A stretch of DNA of 64,000 nucleotides, taken from Phallusia mammillata (lineage: Eukaryota). Below, piece by piece: positions 9,213 through 49,500 of this stretch. The position numbers and the translations under genes were made by a program. Where the stretch lies: positions 11,656,001 through 11,720,000 of the forward strand of contig OZ281501.1 of the NCBI GenBank assembly GCA_965637545.1, in the 5' to 3' direction. The notes beneath the pieces are model-generated. The model had not been told where the DNA came from, searched no databases, and worked only from the letters and a program-made list of their open reading frames with translations. Position 1 is the stretch's first letter. Each line of letters opens with the position of its first letter.

Positions 9213-12200
9213 ATGTTGATTTTGTTGAGTTGCCTGTTTCTTTTACGAGTGTCAGGAAGGCCTACAACCGTGACCACGTCATATCCACTTCAGACTGAAG
9301 CAGAAAGCACGCAACTCTACTTCACATCTTCAGGCCAAAAAACTGCGGAACAAAATTCGCTTTTAAGGCAGAACCCTGTGAGTTTACCTGTCTGTCCTTC
9401 GGAATGTCACTGCTACGCAATTACAATAGTAGACTGCAGTCGTGCAAACTTGACGTACATTCCAATCGAGAGTTTGCAATCTGTTCACGCGACTGTTGAG
9501 GAACGTATCGGTATTCCACCTTTAACCTTGCAGCTGCACTTGGGATTTAACAACATTACAGTCATACATGACGACGCCTTTCTGGTCGGCGGGCGCAACC
9601 TGGAAAATCTGTACCTTCAAAACAACGCAATCAGCTTCGTTCGACCACGCGCCTTTCGCGGATTGATGAAGCTGAAATATTTGGACGTCAGTCACAACCT
9701 CGTTAGTACGCTCGTCCACATTATCACTTCATCAGTGAACAGCACCATTTCCTGCCGCAACCAGTCCGTGTTTGCACCTCTCCGTGACAGTCTATTGTCT
9801 CTGCAGTTATCTTATAACCAGATCGCCGCCATCCCGGACGAATCCTTCGTCAAGTTTCGGCACTTGGAAGTTTTGTCGCTCAGCAACAACCGAATTTCTT
9901 GGATTGGTCGTCATGCTTTCGCTGACTTACGTAACTTGAAAACTCTTGTGTTGAGGGCCAACCCTTTGGGACCTACTACAGTGCAAAATATCGGACACGT
10001 TTTGAGTTACTTTTCAATGGGAATTGCCACTCCTACTGACGATGCGGGGAGACAGAAATTTTGCTCCAGTATTTTTCTTAATGTTTCTGGCCATGAAAAT
10101 GATAAAATAAAATACCTAGATTTGGGTGAAACCAATTTAACTTCAATCCCCTCTTTGTTGCCCTTTTCACTGAGAGTCCTGATGTTGGATGGGAACAAAA
10201 TAACGGAAATAGTGCCACCAGCTTTCAGAAACAGTCCCCTTTTGCAAGTGTTGCACCTGGCCAATAACCGAATTCGCATCATACCTGACGGGATTTTCAG
10301 ATACAATTATCAGCTGCACCTGCTGGATCTATCCAGAAACAGGCTGGAAAATTTGACGACTAATGCTTTTTGTGGATTAGTTAATCTTCAAATTCTTCGT
10401 TTGTACAGAAATCCTACTCTGCGCTCTATTCCTCGAAAGGTATGATTTTGCACACTGTAGCGTTTTATTTAAATAAGTTACCCGCTGTGAATCCCTGGGT
10501 TGCTGCGTAAACAGCGAAAATGTCGGTGAAGGTTTTCACATCACACGAAATAAAATAATTACACTAGTAACAATACCGCTTTTATTACATGATGGAGGTC
10601 TTTTTAATGCTTCTAAAACGGACATTGCCTATACTTACATAGGATTGTACATGTTTGCAGAAAAGTATGCGTGTTTGTTTTGTGGCGTAATCAAGTAACC
10701 AGAAATACACCGAGTTCGTTTTGTTTAGATTTTTTCAGGTACCATACGTTTGGCGGTTTTGTATTTACATGACTGTGGGATTAGTGATCTGCCTATGGGT
10801 CCTTGGATACATCGACTAGCGGGTTTGTGGCTTTATGGAAATCCTCTTGATTGCAGCTGTTCGACTTTGGTCCCAATCCTTAGTGAGTTACGTTATCCGG
10901 GAAACAAAAAACTCCGTCTTGATCCATACAGGTGAAATATCTTGTGTATATGGTACCTGAAGGTATTGAAGGCCCAATGATATTATTTGTGAATGTATTT
11001 GAAAAAATCTAAGGACTTATGGGCGACGAAAAAAAAAATTCCAAAGGGGGCAGATTTTGACAAATACACACTTACATGAATAGATTACTATATTAAGAAG
11101 TTATGTGCGGATGGGCATAAAATATAGCCCATGGAGTATAATTGCGTCTACAATGCATATATCACGTGTTCCTTTGTCTGTTCGAAACAGCAGTAAAACG
11201 CCATAGCTTCTGCAAGCAACACCAGATACGTAAATAAAGCAGACATTTGCCACATGTTCGTTCTGTAACAGTTTGGCAGTTGTTTATTTTGTCAGTTTAG
11301 GGAATAGTTTTTAGGTAGGCCCTATAATACTTGCAAGTACTTTATATCGTGTATGAAACACCTAAGTTAAGTTTAACAGTTTTATTTCTGACACGAGACA
11401 AACTGGTTGTTGGTGTTTTGAGTATTTTTTTGAAAAAACAAGTCTTGCATTGTTAAAAGATAAACCCACGTTCTGTAATGAAAGTGCTTCAAAAGCCCTA
11501 AAAAACAAACAAACATACTGTGCGCACATAAACTGGTTTGGTCAAGAATTACCTGTATAAAGAAATATTCAGCTTGATAGCGAAAGAACTGTTTTTTTAG
11601 AGACCCTGCATGGGACGACCAGGAGACGTGGTCGCACCAAAGGCCAAGCCACACACAGTGTTCTACACCACCACGAATGGCAGGACTCTCCGTCAAAGAT
11701 ATATCACTTTACCACATGTCTTGTTCGGTTCAGGTACAATAGATATTGAAGACAAACCGTCAAGGTGTAGATTCGCCAGAAACACCCACTAAAAGCCATT
11801 TTTTAAACTTTATTCCCGACTATTTCACATACTATTTGTCTATATTGAGGTTTTTCATGATTATGGATTCTTGTTTACTCTATTCGACCTGTTTAAAGCT
11901 GAAATTTGTACCGAATTCCAACACGAGATTGCAATTTACATTTTAAGGAGGCCACAGGTCCTGCAGGGTTACTTGAAGGGAGCCACGAGACCCAAAAGTT
12001 ACTTTTAGGGGGCCATGGTCCGCGAAAGGTTGAAAACCACTGCGTTAAACTAATCAGCAGTTGTTAATATTTGTGCATCCTCGAGTGCGTGATTATACTA
12101 GATCCAAATGAAGTATGCCAGAGAGATAATTCGATTCATTGGTATAGTTGCATAATATTTTATAACACGCCTAGACTTTTTTGTAACAAATAGGTAAACA

Positions 12201-12840
12201 TTTGGGAATCTGTATGAAATCTTTTGTAGCTATTATGCTCTTAACATGTAATAAACGTGATACCAAAAACAACCGATGTTGCCTTATTTAACAGGAGTGG
12301 GACTTGGTTACTCGCTACAAACGCCTGGCAATCGCAAAAGATCCAAACTATAATGATCCAGACTATCACTCCTACTACTACTCAGATGTAGAGACCACAG
12401 CACCCAGCCAATTACAGGATTATTCACTACTTGAAAACTACAACACGGCGACTTCAGATCCAGTTGCAGTATCCATGGAAGATCACAAAATTTCTGAGAT
12501 GTCAACCCGAGGAAACAACTCTTCTTTATGGGTGATTGAAATCCCGCTTTCTGAAGACGCCGAACTAGCAAAAAATTATCAAGGAGATTCGAATTATTAC
12601 AATCTTCCTGGGGATAATGATGACGCGTACTCTGGTGACGGGCCGGCCGCTATTGATTTCGAAAACGATGTAGCATTGTTGTTGGACGAAGAAGACGCGC
12701 TTGTTTACAAGGAAAAGAGTCGAAAGACAGACCTTACAAGCGAGTGGTTGGCTTATTATGAACACGTGATACCTGACGACAACATACGGGATTTAGAGAC
12801 TGATTTCGGGACATATGAATACGATTATCAATTCAAGTAA
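9213..12840 (+). CDS. Secreted LRR protein (~702 aa) with C-terminal acidic Tyr-rich tail
   Basis: Exons 9213-10439, 10729-10931, 11601-11733 and 12295-12840 are phase-compatible. Signal peptide MLILLSCLFLLRVSG, LRRNT CPSECHC, multiple LRRs, LRRCT split over exons 2-3 (WLYGNPLDCSC...CSTPPRMAGLSVKDISLYHMSC). No transmembrane segment in the last exon. Confidence 0.85.
11763..12042. mobile_element. hAT/Charlie-type MITE, left-truncated
   Basis: Ends in GGTTGAAAACCACTG (Charlie-like TIR); about 200 bp closely match 37850-38049. Confidence 0.75.
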
Positions 12841-13301
12841 ATTACGAACCAAGTGTGCTCTATAACAATTCACGCCGCAATGTGGTTGTGAAAAGTAGTC
12901 AGCTTTGTGTGCAAAAAAGCTTTTTAAATGTTTTATTATTTCCAACAGGACGGGTTAACGACGCTTTAACGTCATATAAGTTACAAAAAGTTGCTCTTAA
13001 ATATCTCTTGATTTTTTATTGGTTTGACAGATATTTTTTAGGTGAGTATACATCCGTCCGTGAACAACTGTTTTTGTAAAGTTTTTATTTTCATCCATCA
13101 GACAGTTGAATGGAGATAAGTCACAACAAACAGCCGATTTGGTAACACATAAGTTTATTGCACAGCTAATATAAGAAATGCGAAGTTTTTTCAGGGCTCA
13201 ATACACTCAGCAATTTCCGAAGCATGAATGAATGTCGAGCAATTATTTTACGAGAAATCCAGTGATAACGTTCACAGTGTACAACTGTCAATAGTAAAAC
13301 T

Positions 13302-16300
13302 TCATGTGGGGGCAAACTGGGTTGAAACCCAAGCAAGTCCCCATTTAAGGTTGGTCAGCATAAACTTGAGAGCTTTGGTCCACTGTTCCTCCGAGTTAAA
13401 CTGCATTTTTATGGAGTACGATGCACCCGACCCACCAGTGTCTTCGATCTTACCTTTTTCCATTCTAACAAAAAAGGTTAAATGAATGCATGGTTTAGGG
13501 ATGTTTTGTTTATCAAATGATATAAAGTGTGATGTTGTATAAGTAACCTGTAAGGGAGTGCAAATCCACTGTTTCCCTCCACTTCCTCTTTAAACTGCTG
13601 CAAACAGTCAAGGAATGCAACCATTGCCTGGTCAAATTTAGTGTCCCACAAAAATCGTAGCCCACCTGATCCATACAAAGGAAGATCCTACACAACAACA
13701 GAGACTTTTTGGTCTTGAAATGAGCTATTTAGGGATAGGCTTCAATTATACACAGGGTTGCCATACCGTCCTTATTTCTAAGATTTGTCCTTATTTTAAA
13801 GGGCTATGTCTTAGAAAAGTTCATTGTCCTTATTTCTAAGAAATGTCCTTATTTTTGACTTGAGTCCTTATTTTGTCTTATTTTCAACAATTATGAGTTA
13901 AATCCCTGCTACAAGTAAAAGTAAACCAAGACTTGAGCTGTTGTGAGATGCACGAAACATTTTCTACGAATAAGGGGTAGCTGGTACAGATTGTTTCTGG
14001 CCAAAATATTGCATATGATATGTCATGGCTCATATAAATGCAAAGATTTGTTCAAAAACGCTTGTTTTGTTTCGCATAAAAGTTTAATTTTTCGGTTGTC
14101 CTTATTTTTGGTTTCAAGTCGATGGCAACCCTGATTATACAGTACAAAGGAAGATCCTACACAACAACAGAGACTTTTTGGTCTTGAAATGAGCTATTTA
14201 GGGATAGGCTTCAATTATACAGTACATTCAAATATTTATATGGCACTCATTTTAAAATGTCACAGTTTTGCCACAAATACAAGTGTAGTCGGGTATATTG
14301 ACGGGTTTTGCCATTTGTAAACACAAAAATACCTTTGATTTGTCATCTAATGATTCTAAGTAGGAATGGTTTCCAAAAGGTACAAGCTTGTATCGCTTAA
14401 ACCTGAGACCCATTTTCTTGGCCAGGGAAGAGAGTAGAAGAACAACCTGACCCCAGGCAGCATTAATCTCTGTCCACTCTATGTGCATTCCAGGGAGTCG
14501 GCCTAATCGAAAACCATTTATTGTCCCAAAATGACCCTGATGCCTACAATGCAAAAAAAATCAAACATATTTCTATTACATGCATTTAACATCAATGTGT
14601 AATGTGTATGTAGAAAAAAATACCCAAACATCTAAAAGCACTTTTTCAAACCAGAGAGATTTGGCTTTGTGGTGACAAAATAACTAACCAAATGTGAAAC
14701 GTAGCATTGAAGACATTGGTCTTTGACAACTTTTTTAACTGTGTTTCAACATGAGCAAGTTGCTTGTCTGCACTACATTGTTCTTCCTCCAGTTCAAGTT
14801 GTTGGGCCCGAAGCTCTGAATACTCCTGCATATGTCTGATCAGAAGCAAAATACAAATTTACACACAAAAAAATAACAAATGTTGTTTAAATTATTTAGG
14901 TTATGACTTGTCACAACTATTGTATTTTCTTACTTTTCTTCTTCCTTACAAATTTGTTGCTTTTGTTTTTCAATACCAATGATTTCCTTTTCAACATCTT
15001 GTCTTTCTCTTTCAGTTTCATCTAATCTGCGCACAAAAAAAGTTTTTTTTGTAAATTGCTTTTTATAAAAATGTGTTATTCAATATGTGCTAAAACAGTT
15101 TTGTGGCAAACAAAATAATCTCTGTCTCCAAGCTGATGTATCATGGTGCCTTACAGATACATTTGTCTTGATAAACAACACATCCAAATTATCACACTGT
15201 ATATCACTGCTACAAATTAATTATTTACTGGGAAAGCAAAAGTTTTTCCTCCGTTTTCAACTTCTCCAATTCTTCAGCAAGCTGCTCCACTGAGTCATTC
15301 TTGTCACTTGATTCTATGGTCTTCAGATAGTCTCTTCAAAAATGCAACAGCCATAAGTAAACTAAACAAAAGCTCTACAACAAACAAAAGGTTAAAATCA
15401 CCTGTATTGGTCACATTCCTCTGTACATCTGTCAGACTCTCTTTTCAACTGTTCAACAAGAGTTTCAGTACATTCTTCACACAGAGGATGTTCCATATTT
15501 GAGTTTCCAGACACAATATCAAACAGCCGAACTATAGTCTACAAAAGATCAAATTTTTGAGATAATGCTACTTATCCTGTTTTTTAGTTGACAAAAATAA
15601 ATGTTAAAAATTATATATTTAGGTTAAGAACTAAATGAGTAAAAAATATATGAGTGTTTTACTTTCATGCCATGACTTAGGGTTTCCATTGATACTCCAT
15701 TTGTTTCACCAATAAAAGTAAAGCTGTTTGTGCTTTCTTGACATGTAACAGTATGGTCTGTTGTTGTTGAAACTGTGTTGTTGTCATAAATAGAATGTAC
15801 AGATTCTGTTGCAGCATTAGTTTTGTCACTCCCTGATGACATCACATCATGTTCCTGGGGTGGCTTGTCATCTGATGAGCTTGACTCCTAGTTAACACAA
15901 TATTTGGTATCATCCTGTTCATAGAATTTATGTACAAAACTATAAGTTGTTCCAGGCTCCTATTTGCTTTGGTATAGATACTGATGATAAAATCTACCAA
16001 TAAATGCATAATTAATCACAATATTTAATGGCTGTGCTAGAGTTGCCAAAATGGCAGGATATAGGTCAAAATGTTGCTTTGTTTGCATTATATGATCATT
16101 GTGATGCTCCAAAACACCACTGAAAATATTCTCCGAAAACTTCAAGGCCTTCCAATAATTATGAAAATGTTAACCAAATTGTTTATGGGTGGACTTACCT
16201 AGTCTGATAAACATTATGGTAATAAGGTCTAAAGTTAATTAATGCTTTGGAATAGTAAGTAAAAATAATCACACATAGCTGACTCACCGATACTTCAGCA

Positions 16301-16960: not shown

Positions 16961-18590
16961 GTAGGGACATGTCTAAAAGACGGAAATACGGGACGACGGA
17001 AATACGCAAATCGAGGTCTAAAAGACGGGAGAGACGGGGTTACGGGACAGACGGGAAAAGTGCCAAACTAAAAGACGGGAGAGGCGGGACTACGGGAAAG
17101 CGCATATTCAACATGTCCAAAAGACCGGGACTGGTTAAAAGTTCACGCGCAGTTCTTTTTGCGTTAGACGGGACTACGGAAAAGCATTTGTTCGATATGA
17201 CTAAAAGACGGGACTGGGTAAAAGTTCACACGCAGTTCTTATAGCGTTAGACGAGGCTACGGAAAGGCGTTTGTTAGACATGACTAAAAGACGGGACTGG
17301 GTGAAAGTTCACATATAGTTCTTAAAGCGTTAGGCACGACTCGGAAAAGCGTTTGTTAGACACAGGGAGTCGAACCGCTTGTCATATGGGTTCAGGTTCG
17401 GTTCGGGTTCACTTGGTTTTGTTTTTAAGGGTTCGGGTTCAGGTCCGGTTTTTAAAAATGTATATTTTCGGGTTCGGGTTTTGTTCCGGTTTGGGCAAGT
17501 TATCCGGTCCGAACCGGTTTGCGGTTTTTAAACCGGTTCAAGTTTTTATTCGTTTCAATTCAATTCTACCCATCATCTACCTGGCCTTATCAAACGCCAA
17601 AATAATTTTGCCCGTGTGCTGTTATCTTTGACAGTGCGCTGTTTTGAACAAAAAATCATAAAATATAAAACAGACTGCATTTTTTACGTGTTCGGTTCCG
17701 GTTCGCGTCCAACGCCAAACAAAATATAGGGTTCAACTCCGGTTCGGGTTTTTAGAAAATCGTAAATAGCGGTTCGGGTTCGGTTCGGGTTTAATGAAAT
17801 TAACCGCTCAAACCGGTTCGCGGGTTCGGGTTCAGTTCCGGTTCGACTCCCTGGTTAGACATGACTAAAATACGGGACTGGGTGAAAGTTCACTTATAGT
17901 TCTTATAGCGTTAGACGGGACTACGGAAAAGCGTTTGTTAGACATGACTAAAATACGGAACTGGGTGAAAGTTCACATATAGTTCTTACAGCGTTAGACG
18001 GGACGACGGAAAAGCGCATACGTATTCCACATGATTAAAAGACGGGACTGGGTAAAAGTTCACATATAGTTCCGATAGCGTTAGACGGGACTATGGAATA
18101 GCATTTGTCAGACACGACTAAAAGACGGGACTGGGTGAAAGTTCACATACAGTTCCTATAGCGTTAGACGGGACTACGGAAAAGCGTTTGTTAGACATGA
18201 CTAAAATACGGGACTGGGTGAAAGTTCACACGCAGTTCTCATAGCGTTGGATGGGACTACGGAAAAGCGTTTGTCAGACACGAGTAAAAGACGGGACTGG
18301 GTGAAAGTTCACACATAGTTCTAATAGCGTTAGACTGGACTACGGAAAAGCGTTTGTTAGACATGACTAAAATACGGGACTGGGTGAAAGTTCACACGCA
18401 GTTCTCATAGCGTTGGATGGGACTACGGAAAAGCGTTTGTCAGACACGAGTAAAAGACGGGACTGGGTGAAAGTTCACACATAGTTCTAATAGCGTTAGA
18501 CTGGACTACGGAAAAGCGTTTGTTAGACATATACATGATGAAAGTTCAAATATAGTTCTTATTAGCGTTAGGCAGGACTGGGAAAGTTCA
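16961..18590. repeat. 83-bp minisatellite array (~12 units plus shorter proto-units), interrupted by a MITE
   Basis: Unit starts at 17855, 17938, 18108, 18191, 18274, 18357, 18440 and 18523. Consensus TTAGACATGACTAAAAGACGGGACTGGGTGAAAGTTCACA...GCGTTAGACGGGACTACGGAAAAGCGTTTG. Confidence 0.95.
17363..17853. mobile_element. hAT-type MITE (491 bp) inserted in the satellite
   Basis: Perfect 14-bp TIR CAGGGAGTCGAACC / GGTTCGACTCCCTG, 8-bp TSD GTTAGACA, many subterminal CGGGTT/CGGTTC motifs. Confidence 0.95.
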
Positions 18591-18920
18591 GTGGCACGAC
18601 ACATGTTCAGTGCGCGAAAAAGGCACCACTGGTTTGACTTGATTGATCGACGTGTCCATATCAAACAATTTGTTGCTTCCTATATCAGTGGGAGGCCTCA
18701 AATGTGGGAGTCTAATTTCTCGTTAAATAATGGCCGAGGAATGTGCTCTTAACAAAGTAGCCTTCAGACTCTTACGCTTGCAATACGCGACCACTATATT
18801 TGCGTTTGAACACCTGTTGAAAACGGTGGATGCTTTTTGTAGTTTAAACTCATTACAGCATTTCAATTTCTTGCGTTGTACTCTGCTATTAATGCTGTTT
18901 GTATCTTCGAAGGTTGTAAA

Positions 18921-21635: not shown

Positions 21636-24600
21636 TTAAATTGAACTTAACTGACGTCTCGAAGGGTAAGGATTCACAATAACATTCAATGGACGTAAAT
21701 GAACACGATTACGCCGATATAATACACCATCACTAGTTTTTACAAGATAAGAGCGATGAGATAACTGTTTTTCTATAGTTCCCTGTTGATCCCATAGTTT
21801 GTTTTGGGTATTGTAAAGTTTCACAGGAGTGTTCACTTGTAATTGCAGCATGTTTCTTGTTCCCCTGTCATAATACTTCTTTTGTTGTTTTCTTTCTTTT
21901 CCAAACGGACGGCAAGTTGAACTTTTTAACTTTTCGATATCCAGGGGCATCGTGTGTCTGATTTGCCGACCCATGAGAAGCTGTGCAGGCGATTTTCCTC
22001 AAAGGAGAGGAGCACTCCTAAATATTAACAAACTTTTGTTAAAATCCTGTACACTGGCGTGAGCTTTTTTAAGTAGTTGCTTCGTTGTCTGGACACTCCT
22101 CTCAGCCAGTCCGTTAGATCGTGGATAATGTGGACTCGAGGTTAAATGAAGAAAGCCCCATTCCTCGGCGAATTTTGCAAACTCCTCACTGGAAAACTGA
22201 GGACCGTTATCACTGATAACAGTTTCGGGAATTCCAAACCTGGAAAAAATAGTTTTCAAACCACTTATAACAGACGCCGCAGAAGTTGTAGTCAACGGGG
22301 TTACTTCTGGATATCCGGAGTAGTAGTCCGCTGTTACCAAAAACATTTTTCGGTTCCAATAGAACAGGTCAGTTGCCACTTTCTGAAACGGATAAGAAGG
22401 AGCTTGGTGAGGTTCTAACGGTTGGCGTTGTTGCTGTGACCTGAATTTTGCACAAATGGCACAGGAAGAAACCAAACCAGATATGTCGTTGGATAACCCA
22501 GGCCAATATATACTTTCCCGAGCTCGTCCTTTGCATTTTACTTCACCCAAATGGCCTTCATGCACACGTTCTAAAAAATAACTGCGCATAGACATTGGAA
22601 CAACTATTCGAGATCCACGAAACAAAATACCGTCAACAACAGAAAGTTCATTTTTGACATCCCAAAAGGGTTTTGCTAAAACAGGACAAGCACGCTTATG
22701 TAAAGGCCAACCATTATTTACAAGACGCGTTACAATTTGCAACTGTTCGTCACATATGGTTTTACTTTGTAACTTTTGTTTAACTAATGGCATACAAGCA
22801 ATAGCGGATACAATTAGATCTACATATTCACATACACTATGACAAGAAAGCGATTGAACGGACACACTGTTCTCCACACATCTTGATAACAAATCAGCTG
22901 TGTGCATGAATTTACCTGGAGTAAACTCTGCGGTGAAATGAAATCTTTGCAACCGGATCATTAGACGTTGAATGCGCAACGGACAGTTATTTAACTCCTT
23001 GAGAAACAACGCTATGAGAGGTTTGTGATCAGTTTCTACCACAAACTTCTGACCATAAACATACTGATAAAATCTTTCACATGCAAAGGTGATAGCAAGC
23101 AATTCTTTTTCAATTTGTGCATACCTTGTTTCAGCGGTTGTTAAAGCTCTTGCCGCATAAGCCACTGGCTGCCACATGTTGTCATGCTGTTGCAAAATTA
23201 CAGCTCCAAGTCCATGTTTAGATGCGTCTGCCGAAATTTTGATCGATTTCTTGGGGTCGAAAAACCGAAGTACTGGGGCAGTTGTGACCAGCCGTTTTAA
23301 ATTCCTCCATTCCATTTCGTGTGCTTGCGTCCACTCCCAGTTGCTCCGTTTATGCAATAACAAACGCAAAGAAGATGTTTTAGTAGACAAGTCGGAAATG
23401 AAACGACCTAGGTACGTGACCATTCCCAAAAATTTCAGCAAGTCACCCTTAGACTGTGGACGCTTTAGTTGCTCTATTGCATGAACTTTATTTGGATCAG
23501 GTTGAACACCTGAAGCACTAACAACTTCACCAAGAAAAGTAATCTTGTCTACACCGAACACACATTTTTCCTTATTGAGTTTCAGATTATTGCGTTGCAA
23601 AACCGTTAACACATTTTTAAGCCTCATGTCATGTTCCTGCTTAGTTGAACCCCAAACCACAATATCGTCCATAGACGTAACAACGCCATTCATGTGTTCA
23701 AACATCATGTACACCAACTTGTGAAACACTTCTGGCGCAGAACAAATGCCGAACGGCATGCGCAAAAATCTATACCGTCCAAACGGAGTATTAAACGTAC
23801 AAAGCTTAGAACTATCTTCATCCAACTTTACTTGCCAAAACCCAGACAAAGCGTCGAGTTTAGAAAATACTTTAGCATTTGAAAATTGACTAATAATTTC
23901 TTCTCTAGTCGGAAGACAGAAATGCTCACGCAAAATTGCTTTGTTTAAATCTCGCGGATCTAAGCAAACTCTTAGTTTTCCGTTTTTCTTTTCTACTATT
24001 ACAAGAGAGTTCACCCACTTAGTTGGTTCTTCTATTCTTTTGATTACTTGCATGCTTTCCATTCTTTGTAGCTCCTGTTGTAGTTTGTTTTTAAGTGCAA
24101 ATGGAATTTTTCTGCTGGGACGGACTACGGGACAAACTCTGCTATCGGTCTTTATTCGGTGACAACCTGGAACACAACCCAACCCTTGAAATAAATCTGA
24201 AAAGCTGGACAGAAAATTTTGTTCGTCACTGACAATCGGTTCCAGTCTATTTATTAGGCCAAGAGTTACTGCTCCATTTAATCCTATAATAGGCAATGCA
24301 TTAATCTCCACAACAACAAATGGTAGAGTAAATGATTGCTCTCTGTATTGAAGTGTTGAACTAATTGTCCCACAAACTGGAATATGGTGGCCAGTATATG
24401 AGATCAATCGAATATTAGTAGAAGAAACATATGGACGTTCCTGAAGTTTTTGAAAATCATTCCGTGACAAAATATTAACTTGGGCTCCCGTATCTATCTT
24501 AAAACGAAGTGTACATGAAAGCACAAAAATGTCAACAAGCCAATCTTTTGGTGAACTAGTAGTACTTACAGATTGCATGTTGTACGTCTGAATTGTATCC

Positions 24601-25346
24601 GCGCGTTGCGCTTGCGGGTGATTAGCTGCACTGCAACATCGAGCGAAGTGGTTTCTTCCACCACACTTCAAGCATCGCCTTCCCCAGGCAGGACACGCTC
24701 TGACGTCATGTCGCAAGGCACAGAATCTGCAAACTCGAGGCGCTGGTAATTGATTACCACGTGGTTCGCGTTGAACAGCATCCAAGCTAAAACTTTTAGA
24801 ATTTGTTGATCGAAACATTGTCATTTGCGATCTTACTGTTTCGTTTGTTATGCACATTTTAATAGCTTTTTCAAGCGTTAGTTCCACTTCCCGCAGCAAA
24901 CTTTGACGAAGTTGATCACACTTGATACCAATAATAATTTTGTCTCGGATTAATGAGTCGCAAAGTTCACCGAAATCACAGCTTTTAGACAGTTTTTTTA
25001 AATCGGTTATAAAAACATCTATTCTTTCACCATCATTTTGATTTCTAGAAAAAAACCTGTATCGCTCGCTGGTGATATTCTTCCTCGGACAACAGTAGCT
25101 TTCGAAGGCATTGACCACAGTTTCAAAGTGCATTTCTTGTCCTTCTTCAAATTTAAATGTTGAGTGGATGGTTTGACCTTGCTCTCCCAACACGTGGAGC
25201 AACATAGATGTTTTAACTTTTGCAGCCTTTCCGTCATAACCAACAGCTGTCAAATAAAGCCTAAATCCCCTAATAAACTTAACCCAGTTTTGTGACACAT
25301 TGCCACTCCATTGCATAGCTTCCGGCAGTGAGAACGAACCTTCCAT
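21636..25346 (-). pseudogene. gag-pol polyprotein (~1236 codons) with one in-frame TGA in the integrase
   Basis: Zinc knuckles CRFCALRHDVRAC and CLKCGGRNHFARC; protease DTGA; RT SMDD; RNase H DAS..EKELL..TDHKPL; integrase HHCC and D,D(35)E. ORF 25346-21999 continues in the same frame after TGA as GKSPAQLLMGRQIR to 21636. Confidence 0.93.
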
Positions 25347-26065: not shown

Positions 26066-26534
26066 GACGTCAAGCTGAGCCCTCCCGCTATCGTAAACCA
26101 GTGAGTTACTCTCTTGGTACTTCTGCCTACAGTGTCTTTCTTGACCAAACGAGCGTTAGACACATTTACGTTTCGGGAGCCTGTGGGTGAATCTCTGGGT
26201 CATACGGGGTCAAAATTCACATGGACCATCTTTAGACCAATACCTATTATGTGTGTAAATTTGAAAAAGTTTGAACCATTCTTTCTTGACCAAAACGTGG
26301 GAACAAATCCGCGCTAAAAATTTCACGTTTTGGGGGGCTGTGGGTGAACCGAGGGATCAAACGGGGTCAAAATTCACATGGACCATCTTTAGACCAATAT
26401 CTGTAATGTGTGTAAATTTGAAAAAGTTTGAACCATTCTTTCTTGACCAAAACGTGGGAACAAATCTGCGTTAGAAAGAAAAAAATACATAGACAAAAAC
26501 AATATGTGTCCCCTTCAGGGAAGGGGACCCATAA
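26066..26534 (+). mobile_element. Non-autonomous Helitron/Helentron-like element with internal 157-bp tandem repeat
   Basis: Starts GACGTCAAGCTGAGCCCTCCCGCT and ends in hairpin GTCCCCTTC-AGG-GAAGGGGAC plus CCATAA. Both ends recur, inverted, at 49309 and 48121. No TIR or TSD. Confidence 0.65.
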
Positions 26535-46508: not shown

Positions 46509-49500
46509 ATGGATAATCAAGAAAGCACAGTTGTAAAACTGAATCTGTATAAACTCGATTAAACAGACCGGCATGTTTACTAATGAAATAATGTGTAGGT
46601 TGTTTCTCTTTGTTTGTATTGGTTCTAAAATAAACTGTTGGTTTCAATTTGTGCGTAATTTCTTTTAATGTTGTTTTGTCTGATTTCAGATCGATCTAAT
46701 TCATTCAGCATTTGTTGTGCACACACTTTATCAACAACAAAAGTTGGGAAAATATTGTGACCTAAAGGTTTTGGTTGGGGACAAGCAGTACTTTGTACAT
46801 AGATGTATCCTGGCAGCTGCTTCCGCACAACTTGATTCACAAATTAATGTAAGCTTTTTATTTTCATTTGTCTTTTTTACAAAACAGTTACCAACAGTGC
46901 TTCATACCGCAACGAAACAAAACAAAATACGCTATTCGTTCTCAGCAAATTATGTATTTCGTTCCGGTACCGATATTTTCATTTCGTTCTGGTACCGATA
47001 TTATCGTTTTGTTCCGGTCTAACTGAAATTACTTATTTTGTGGTCTTAACAAAAGATCCTCTCTTTGTGGTCTTTACAATTAAACAAACAAGGAAAAAAG
47101 TTGCAACAGACAGCAAATACTGTCAAGGATAGTTCATACATCACTTTACATTTGTCAGTTAAAGTCAAACAGGTTGTACATTGTTGGAGCTTTAACAGTA
47201 TTTCGTTCGGTTTCAGTACAGAATATTTTTTATTTCTGTATTTCGTTCCAGTATTTGAGCCAAAAATCATTTCTTATGTTTTGGTATAACATTCCATTCC
47301 AGTATGAAACCTTGGTTACCAACATGTGACTTTTATTGATTTGTTTGTTTTTGTTTTTTGAAAATTTGTGTAATACCATCTTTACTGTTGTATTAAGTTA
47401 AATGTATAGTTATACTTTGAAAAAACCTAAAACCCTAAAAACATAAATCAAACTTTTTTGACCCAGGGGCAAAGGTATTGACTTTTCAGACAAAGTAAGG
47501 GAGAATTTGTTTGCATTTTATTGAACTTTCCAGCTATGTCTATGCTCTTGTAATCATGACAAGTTATTGAAATTCTGTTAGTTCAGATTTGTATATTATT
47601 AAAATATACACAAGCAATTTAAGGACAGTTATTTCATTTTTGTTGGAATATTTACATTTGTTTTTTCATTGTTGTGTTAAAACAACAACTTTTCTTAATT
47701 GTCACCAATAGTTTTAAAATAATCAAGGTCTTATTTTACATTTTTCATAAATTACTCTGTGTTTGTTTTTCAGGGATTGGATACAATACAACTTGTTGGT
47801 GTAACTTATTATGGGTTTGAGTGCCTTTTGGAAATTTTGTACTCTGGGAAGTTGAATGATATTTCCAGCCTAAGTGATGCTAAGTTTCAACAAATTGTTA
47901 GTGCTGCTGATGCATTGAATGCAGAAACAGTAAGTTAAAATAATATATACATTGTTTGCTAATCTATCGGTCTAGTACTTATTATAAAATCTTTTCAGGT
48001 TATGGAATATTGCACGAGGGAAAGGGGTGACCTGATGGCAATTCTTTTGCGGAGGAGTAGCACTGTAAATGTTGGAAGCATGGCTTCTCAGGTTTGATAA
48101 AATTTATTTTTTGCACATTTTTATGGGTCCCCTTCCTGAAGGGGACACATATTGTTTTTGTCCGTATTTTTTTTTCTTTTTTTCTGTCTAACGCTGGTTT
48201 GTGAGACACATTTGGTCAAGAAAGAGTGCTTTGAATGTGTTCAAATTTACAGAGATGTTAGTTAATAATCCAAATTGGATCCTCCTGAAGTTTGATCCCG
48301 ATTGACCCAGCGGTTCACCCACAGGCCCCCAAAACGATTTTTTTAAAAACAGCTGTACTGACTAAAGTACATAATCCGAGAGTTTCATGCTTTGTTGGTT
48401 GGTGCAATGTATAGTATTGTAAAGAATTTTGTAACTTTTTATTGGATTCACCAATTTTCACCCCTAAACCCCGAAAAAATAAGTTTTAGGCCAGAAATAC
48501 AAGCCCTAATGTGCTAAAATGTTAAACAATTATATGCAGTAGGTTATTCGTTTAGTATTTAAAATTTTGCATTAATCGGCCAAATAGTTACTTTTACAGT
48601 CCATAATATGTGTACACTGTCAGTCAGATAGAAGTCTCACATCTCAATGGAGTAATTTATTGGTTTACGATTAATGGGGGTGAATGCAGAGCGGTAGTAT
48701 TTAAAATTTGGCCTTAATCGGCCAAATAGTTACTTTTACAGTCCATAATATGTGTACACTGTCAGTCAGATAGAAGTATCACATCTCAATGGAGTAATTT
48801 ATTGGTTTACGGCAGGGGTGTCCAACACGTGGCACGCAGAGCATTTGAAAATGGCACGCAAGCTTTTGCACATTCAGATGATAAACATTAGGATTTATCA
48901 GGCAATTAATTTTTTTCTATTGATTCTTCTCCAAATTTAGTAAAGATTATCAGTATCAAGGTTACACAAACTCACTGATTAAATTGGTCGTTTTTTGAGC
49001 CCCGTTGCAAACTATTTGTATCTTGTGTCGCATAAATGAAATAAAATGTTTCTGGAGTATCACAAACAAGTTTACTCGCATTTCACGACATATTTTTTTC
49101 TAATTAATTAGGGTTTTACATATTGGCAAAATTTTCGGATTGAGTCCATACCATTAAGACGTTTAAGACATGGTTTGGAAAAAGTACCAAACGTTGGCAC
49201 GCGAGTATATTTTAAAACCAAAATTGGCATGGCGGTGTGTTCGAGTTGGACATCCCTGGTTTACGGTTAAGGCAAATGAATGCAGAGCGGGAGGGCTCAG
49301 CTTGACGTCCTAAAATCTGGGGTGCGCATTATGCATGGGTACAACAATTTTTGAAGAAAATCTCCCTCGAAATAAAACTTGAAATCACACCTTTCTTCTT
49401 GTTTGTTGTCAATCATGCATCATATTCAGCCATCCTGCCCAACACACTTAGTCAGTAAAATTCATAATTGACGACACTATCCTTTTCCATTTGTAAACGC

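Follow-up and report, generated by a model that had tools for sequence, protein, structure and literature searches.

How does a gene fare when the 3' splice site of one of its introns is present twice, in identical form, and the first of the two copies would lead the transcript into a transposon? This question is raised by the Beclin-1 gene of the ascidian Phallusia mammillata, in a 64-kb stretch of DNA (referred to below as the window; all positions are positions in it). An earlier note on this DNA had claimed that a duplication associated with a miniature transposon (MITE) places a decoy acceptor in front of Beclin-1 exon 8. Here, we consider what the duplicated structure is, how it may have arisen, what splicing to the extra acceptor would do to the product, and which of the two acceptors is likely to be used.

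The locus is the Beclin-1 gene. The open reading frames of exons 7, 8 and 9 match the Pfam family PF04111 (APG6/BARA) with E values of 1.5e-30 to 7.6e-11, across profile positions 13-178. Moreover, the translations of all nine exons are contained, exactly and in order, in the Beclin-1 protein of P. mammillata (UniProt A0A6F9D825; CAB3225355.1; 465 aa), and the gaps between them consist of split codons only. This protein, whose cluster has one member, was reached through a full-length ascidian Beclin-1 (from a representative search with exon 7) followed by alignment with the single exons; a word search with the exon 7 reading frame returned relatives only, at identities of 86% or less, and exact matching of the protein and of the exon 7 and exon 9 reading frames gave no contig. 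The exons are as follows.

16464-16288, minus strand: Beclin-1 exon 1
15887-15663, minus strand: Beclin-1 exon 2
15538-15402, minus strand: Beclin-1 exon 3
15333-15229, minus strand: Beclin-1 exon 4
15026-14934, minus strand: Beclin-1 exon 5
14835-14689, minus strand: Beclin-1 exon 6
14543-14333, minus strand: Beclin-1 exon 7, with donor GT at 14332-14331; residues 296-365 of A0A6F9D825; APG6/BARA match
13687-13548, minus strand: Beclin-1 exon 8 (140 nt), with donor GTTACT; residues 366-411 of A0A6F9D825; APG6 match
13464-13302, minus strand: Beclin-1 exon 9 and stop codon; residues 413-465 of A0A6F9D825; APG6 match

Introns 1 to 8 measure 400, 124, 68, 202, 98, 145, 645 and 83 nt. A leucine-rich-repeat gene (Pfam LRR_8 and LRRNT; plus strand, 9213-10445 and 12304-12840) is convergent with Beclin-1, with less than 500 nt between the coding ends of the two genes. 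Just upstream of Beclin-1 lies an 83-bp tandem repeat array, in two blocks at 17029-18609, which yields repeated short open reading frames.

The intron 7 region contains a direct repeat in which 13674-13752 and 14143-14221 are identical at 79 of 79 positions, at an offset of 469 nt. A chance match is excluded by the length of the repeat, and no third copy is present across the 64-kb window. Within each copy, 65 nt of intron 7 run into the opening 14 nt of exon 8, and the two copies are separated by a hAT-type MITE. The earlier claim of a 79-bp duplication carrying the intron 7 end and 14 nt of exon 8 around such an element is borne out exactly, as is the presence of a sequence-identical extra acceptor upstream of the real one; the positions given for the end of exon 7 (14333), the upstream AG (14158-14157) and the start of exon 8 (13687) are likewise correct in the sequence. 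The two copies do lie on either side of the MITE, but the upstream copy does not abut it, being set apart from it by one C and a target-site duplication. The parts of the structure, in the order in which they are met on the gene strand, are listed here.

14157-14332, minus strand: ancestral intron 7 in full (176 nt), with the decoy AG at 14158-14157 as its end; the decoy exon starts at 14156
14143-14221, minus strand: upstream 79-nt copy, composed of TGTATAAT, 57 nt of intron and 14 nt of exon 8
14052-14156, minus strand: decoy reading frame by translation, 34 codons ending in NKRF and then TGA at 14054-14052; the tail is absent from A0A6F9D825
14146-14143, minus strand: junction microhomology TGTA, just upstream of the C at 14142
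14142, minus strand: single C separating the upstream copy from the left target-site duplication, at the start of the second 80-bp unit
14134-14141, minus strand: left target-site duplication TGTATAAT, the same sequence as 13745-13752, abutting the terminal inverted repeat
13753-14133, minus strand: hAT-type MITE, 381 bp, with perfect 12-nt terminal inverted repeats, a subterminal motif and no long open reading frame
13745-13752, minus strand: right target-site duplication TGTATAAT, abutting the terminal inverted repeat and at the same time supplying the opening 8 nt of the downstream 79-nt copy
13674-13752, minus strand: downstream 79-nt copy, which holds the productive acceptor (AG at 13689-13688, exon from 13687)

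Subtraction of the 469 added bases from the 645-nt intron leaves an intron of 176 nt, and the upstream acceptor therefore ends a complete ancestral intron. Eight of the 79 repeated nucleotides are the MITE's own target-site duplication, and TGTATAAT is present three times because the C at 14142 and the left target-site duplication separate the upstream copy from the MITE.

The assignment of the inserted element rests on several features. Terminal inverted repeats of hAT elements follow the consensus YARNG. Here the ends are perfect 12-nt inverted repeats, CAGGGTTGCCAT, at 14133-14122 and 13753-13764, and with one mismatch allowed this 12-mer occurs just twice in the 64-kb window. The subterminal motif AATAAGGAC is present in about seven copies within the MITE, mainly at one end, and the longest open reading frames inside the element (49-63 aa) include no transposase. 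Considering the 8-bp target-site duplication, the CAGGG-type ends and the asymmetric subterminal repeats, the MITE can be taken as a non-autonomous hAT element, and its designation as a hAT MITE in the earlier note is supported by its target-site duplication, its inverted repeats, its 381-bp length and its want of a transposase reading frame. The hAT transposon Hermes has the target preference nTnnnnAn (PMC10368747); set against it, TGTATAAT carries the expected A at position 7 but a G at position 2. No further copies of the MITE were found in the window or in the loci of two relatives, the MITE end gave no matches in a metagenome scan, and positions 13200-14700 gave no Rfam match. An ATTAAA hexamer is present on the gene strand within the MITE, at about 14090-14080, and could be a premature polyadenylation signal within intron 7.

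How did the duplicated structure arise? On the gene strand the sequence runs from GAA-TGTA through a first unit (C-TGTATAAT-67 nt-TGTA) and a second unit (C-TGTATAAT-MITE-TGTATAAT-67 nt-TGTA) to TGG. The extra DNA is thus an 80-bp unit repeated head to tail, with a 4-nt TGTA microhomology at the junction: TGTA stands before unit 1 and at the end of both 80-bp units, and there are two copies of the 13-mer TGTACTGTATAAT, one at 14226-14214 and the other at 14146-14134. A giant target-site duplication of 79-80 bp, which would make the whole repeat a product of transposition, is ruled out by the left flank, which has the extra C and the 8-bp target-site duplication. In a related ascidian, a single acceptor is found at this exon junction of the Beclin-1 locus, and the repeat is absent; the relatives' exons show about 75% nucleotide identity, and their introns are too diverged for alignment. 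A neighbour of Beclin-1 at the related ascidian locus is a gene with FAM200/ZBED5-type (hAT-transposase-derived) domains. Judged from its sequence, the P. mammillata allele is a genuine and ordinary structural variant, with good support for the structural reading.

The simplest origin consists of two separate events. An 80-bp segment across the boundary of intron 7 and exon 8, reaching 14 nt into the exon, would have been tandem-duplicated through the TGTA microhomology, and the 381-bp non-autonomous hAT-type element would then, in the presumed order of events, have inserted into TGTATAAT of the second unit with an 8-bp target-site duplication. Small tandem duplications are common in the window, since two others are found within the same 64 kb, at 26165-26477 and 48553-48811. 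The former consists of 156 nt present twice at 90% identity, and the latter of 117 nt present twice at 97% identity with a spacing of 142 nt. Elsewhere in the window, an uninterrupted reading frame of 1115 aa on the minus strand (21999-25346) resembles, by eye, a retrotransposon pol (protease, reverse transcriptase, integrase), and a 112-aa reading frame directly downstream of it (21636-21974) looks, by eye, like its continuation.

Two other accounts of the structure need to be weighed against separate duplication and insertion. The MITE lies in the second 80-bp unit, and its target site is only 1 bp from the duplication junction (5 bp when the TGTA ambiguity is allowed for), a closeness expected by chance about 4% of the time within an intron of some 250 nt. 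For this reason a single-event origin is a live alternative. A double-strand break within a few bases of the left end of a MITE already in place would have been followed by the copying of about 80 nt from a MITE-free homologue and by joining at TGTA, a form of synthesis-dependent end joining in which the duplication is caused by the MITE rather than independent of it. The upstream copy is indeed a footprint-free empty site, as would be expected of an unoccupied template. Against this, the MITE would have to have been heterozygous and the break unusually placed, two independent and ordinary events give the same sequence in a window where small tandem duplications are frequent, and the argument from proximity is post hoc. 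Taken together, these points leave the single event possible, with the balance somewhat against it. The description of the duplication as MITE-associated is, by the same token, only suggested: the 1-bp distance hints at a link, and yet the simplest history is that of two separate events.

Perhaps the structure is instead an artefact of assembly, in which a heterozygous site with and without the MITE was mis-joined into a false duplication. Ascidian genomes are highly heterozygous, and all of the junctions but one also exist in a simple empty or a simple filled allele. The remaining junction, from the exon 8 start through the C and the target-site duplication into the MITE, is shared with a simple filled allele over only 5 nt (TGTAC) and therefore needs reads of its own. 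Moreover, the structure has the logic of real events, with both a target-site duplication and a microhomology, and we regard an artefact as very improbable.

If the exon 7 donor were joined to the upstream acceptor, the consequences for the protein would be severe. The second half of the BARA domain (residues 366-465) would give way to 34 unrelated residues. The predicted 34-residue tail followed by a stop had been given correctly, as the translation of this frame shows; the loss that had been put at about 95 C-terminal residues is in fact 100 (366-465 of 465 aa). The stop codon lies in MITE sequence. The decoy exon extends for 609 nt to the exon 8 donor, and its stop lies some 500 nt upstream of the final exon junction. 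By the exon-junction rule, a stop codon far upstream of the last junction makes a transcript a substrate for nonsense-mediated decay (NMD), and the decoy transcript is therefore predicted to be one. Rescue by re-splicing was considered and rejected: the decoy junction lacks a GT, and use of the cryptic donors at +11 and +16 would shift the frame. In the predicted fold of the pre-mRNA the two terminal inverted repeats pair with one another and neither acceptor is hidden, with a mean unpaired probability of 0.44 for the decoy versus 0.35 for the true acceptor.

Which of the two acceptors is used? Each 3' splice-site module consists of a branch region, a pyrimidine tract, the AG and 14 nt of exon, and the two modules lie 469 nt apart. 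The upstream and downstream acceptors are identical from -65 to +14 and diverge only past exon position +14, so that they are equal under any scoring of those positions. What differs is the surroundings, since only the downstream acceptor has exon 8's purine-rich stretch and donor beside it. A productive mRNA would have to use the downstream module, with the upstream copy and the MITE removed within the 645-nt intron. In A0A6F9D825, K365 at the end of exon 7 is followed without a gap by D366 and LPLYGSGG of exon 8, and this direct joining means that the public product is that of the downstream acceptor. That protein is possibly from an animal without the duplication, and may derive either from cDNA or from a gene model; the absence of the decoy isoform from protein collections is uninformative about use of the decoy.

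The published rules conflict on which acceptor should win. In beta-globin constructs carrying two copies of the 3' splice site, a proximal copy followed by 14 nt of exon was passed over and splicing was exclusively to the distal site (PMC5389562); for the effect of exon length on this choice, the authors refer to Reed & Maniatis 1986. Human data, on the other hand, indicate that among competing acceptors of equal strength with short flanking introns the upstream one is strongly preferred (PMC9225289), in favour of the competition expected in the earlier note. We lean, as a prediction, towards the view that the downstream acceptor probably supplies most of the steady-state mRNA, with some use of the decoy hidden by NMD. 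A fraction of transcripts would then be spliced to the upstream acceptor and removed by NMD, both the choice of site and the fate of these transcripts being predicted, and their loss would make the allele mildly to moderately hypomorphic.

The opposite outcome deserves consideration, since the decoy has the full ancestral intron in front of it and emerges first during transcription, and could therefore dominate. The exon 7 donor would in that case pair with the nearest acceptor because the 176-nt ancestral intron reaches the decoy undisturbed. Most transcripts would be truncated or degraded, and the allele would be a strong hypomorph or a null, carried heterozygously. The Beclin-1 introns are short throughout (68-400 nt, with 176 nt to the decoy), the proximity rule for short introns favours the upstream site at equal strength (PMC9225289), the acceptors match from -65 to +14, and no structure masks the decoy in the predicted fold. 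Against dominance of the upstream site stand the mere 14 nt of native exon that follow the decoy, the purine-rich stretch and exon 8 donor beside the downstream acceptor, the use of the distal site in the duplicated-acceptor constructs with a 14-nt exon (PMC5389562), and the known protein A0A6F9D825, which corresponds to splicing at the downstream acceptor and matches the window at 100% identity. We judge it unlikely that the upstream acceptor wins. A bolder combination joins this outcome with the single-event origin: a strong Beclin-1 hypomorph segregating in a wild chordate, generated by a break beside a hAT MITE that was repaired off a MITE-free homologue, with NMD hiding the product. The gene's own acceptor would here have been copied in front of the MITE, and the ancestral intron would splice into transposon sequence. 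As a whole, this combination seems distinctly improbable.

How does the allele compare with systems already described? It is a new instance of known things, namely an intronic hAT MITE, a tandem duplication at a microhomology and a competition between duplicated acceptors, and does not represent a new kind of system. The closest parallel is the beta-globin series 3'D-14/55/205 of Reed & Maniatis 1986 (reused in PMC5389562), which likewise has two identical acceptors in cis, the proximal one with 14 nt of exon. The Beclin-1 case differs in being a natural ascidian allele with short introns, acceptors 469 nt apart and a transposon between them. Intronic hAT MITEs with ends of the Hermes/Ac/Tol2 type (PMC10368747) share the 8-bp target-site duplication, the short CAGGG inverted repeats, the asymmetric subterminal repeats and the lack of a transposase, whereas the Beclin-1 element is a single copy in the window and matches nTnnnnAn on one side only. 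Junction tandem duplications absorbed into introns (PMC2891723) are also copies of a splice site bounded by microhomology, in which use of the outer site leaves the mRNA unchanged; to this the Beclin-1 allele adds a transposon 1 bp from the junction, which is the source of the stop in the alternative frame. Finally, as in alleles with transposon-derived pseudo-exons or premature stops, transposon sequence would enter the mRNA and end the frame, but the decoy acceptor in Beclin-1 is a copy of the gene's own and does not come from the element.

The allele is of value as a splicing experiment set up by nature, and possibly as a natural Beclin-1 hypomorph, in a model ascidian. If the decoy is used, Beclin-1, an essential autophagy gene, would have a naturally occurring knock-down allele in P. 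mammillata, a model species of developmental biology. Use of the decoy would also make the locus a clean in vivo test of nearest-site pairing in short introns against the context of the downstream exon, for which the two rules predict opposite outcomes. If the decoy is ignored, the allele would illustrate how junction duplications and transposon insertions can be absorbed harmlessly into introns, as one route of intron growth. And if the single-event reading is true and general, templated repair next to transposons would be a route to duplicated splice sites, and to new alternative exons and introns, in ascidian genomes.
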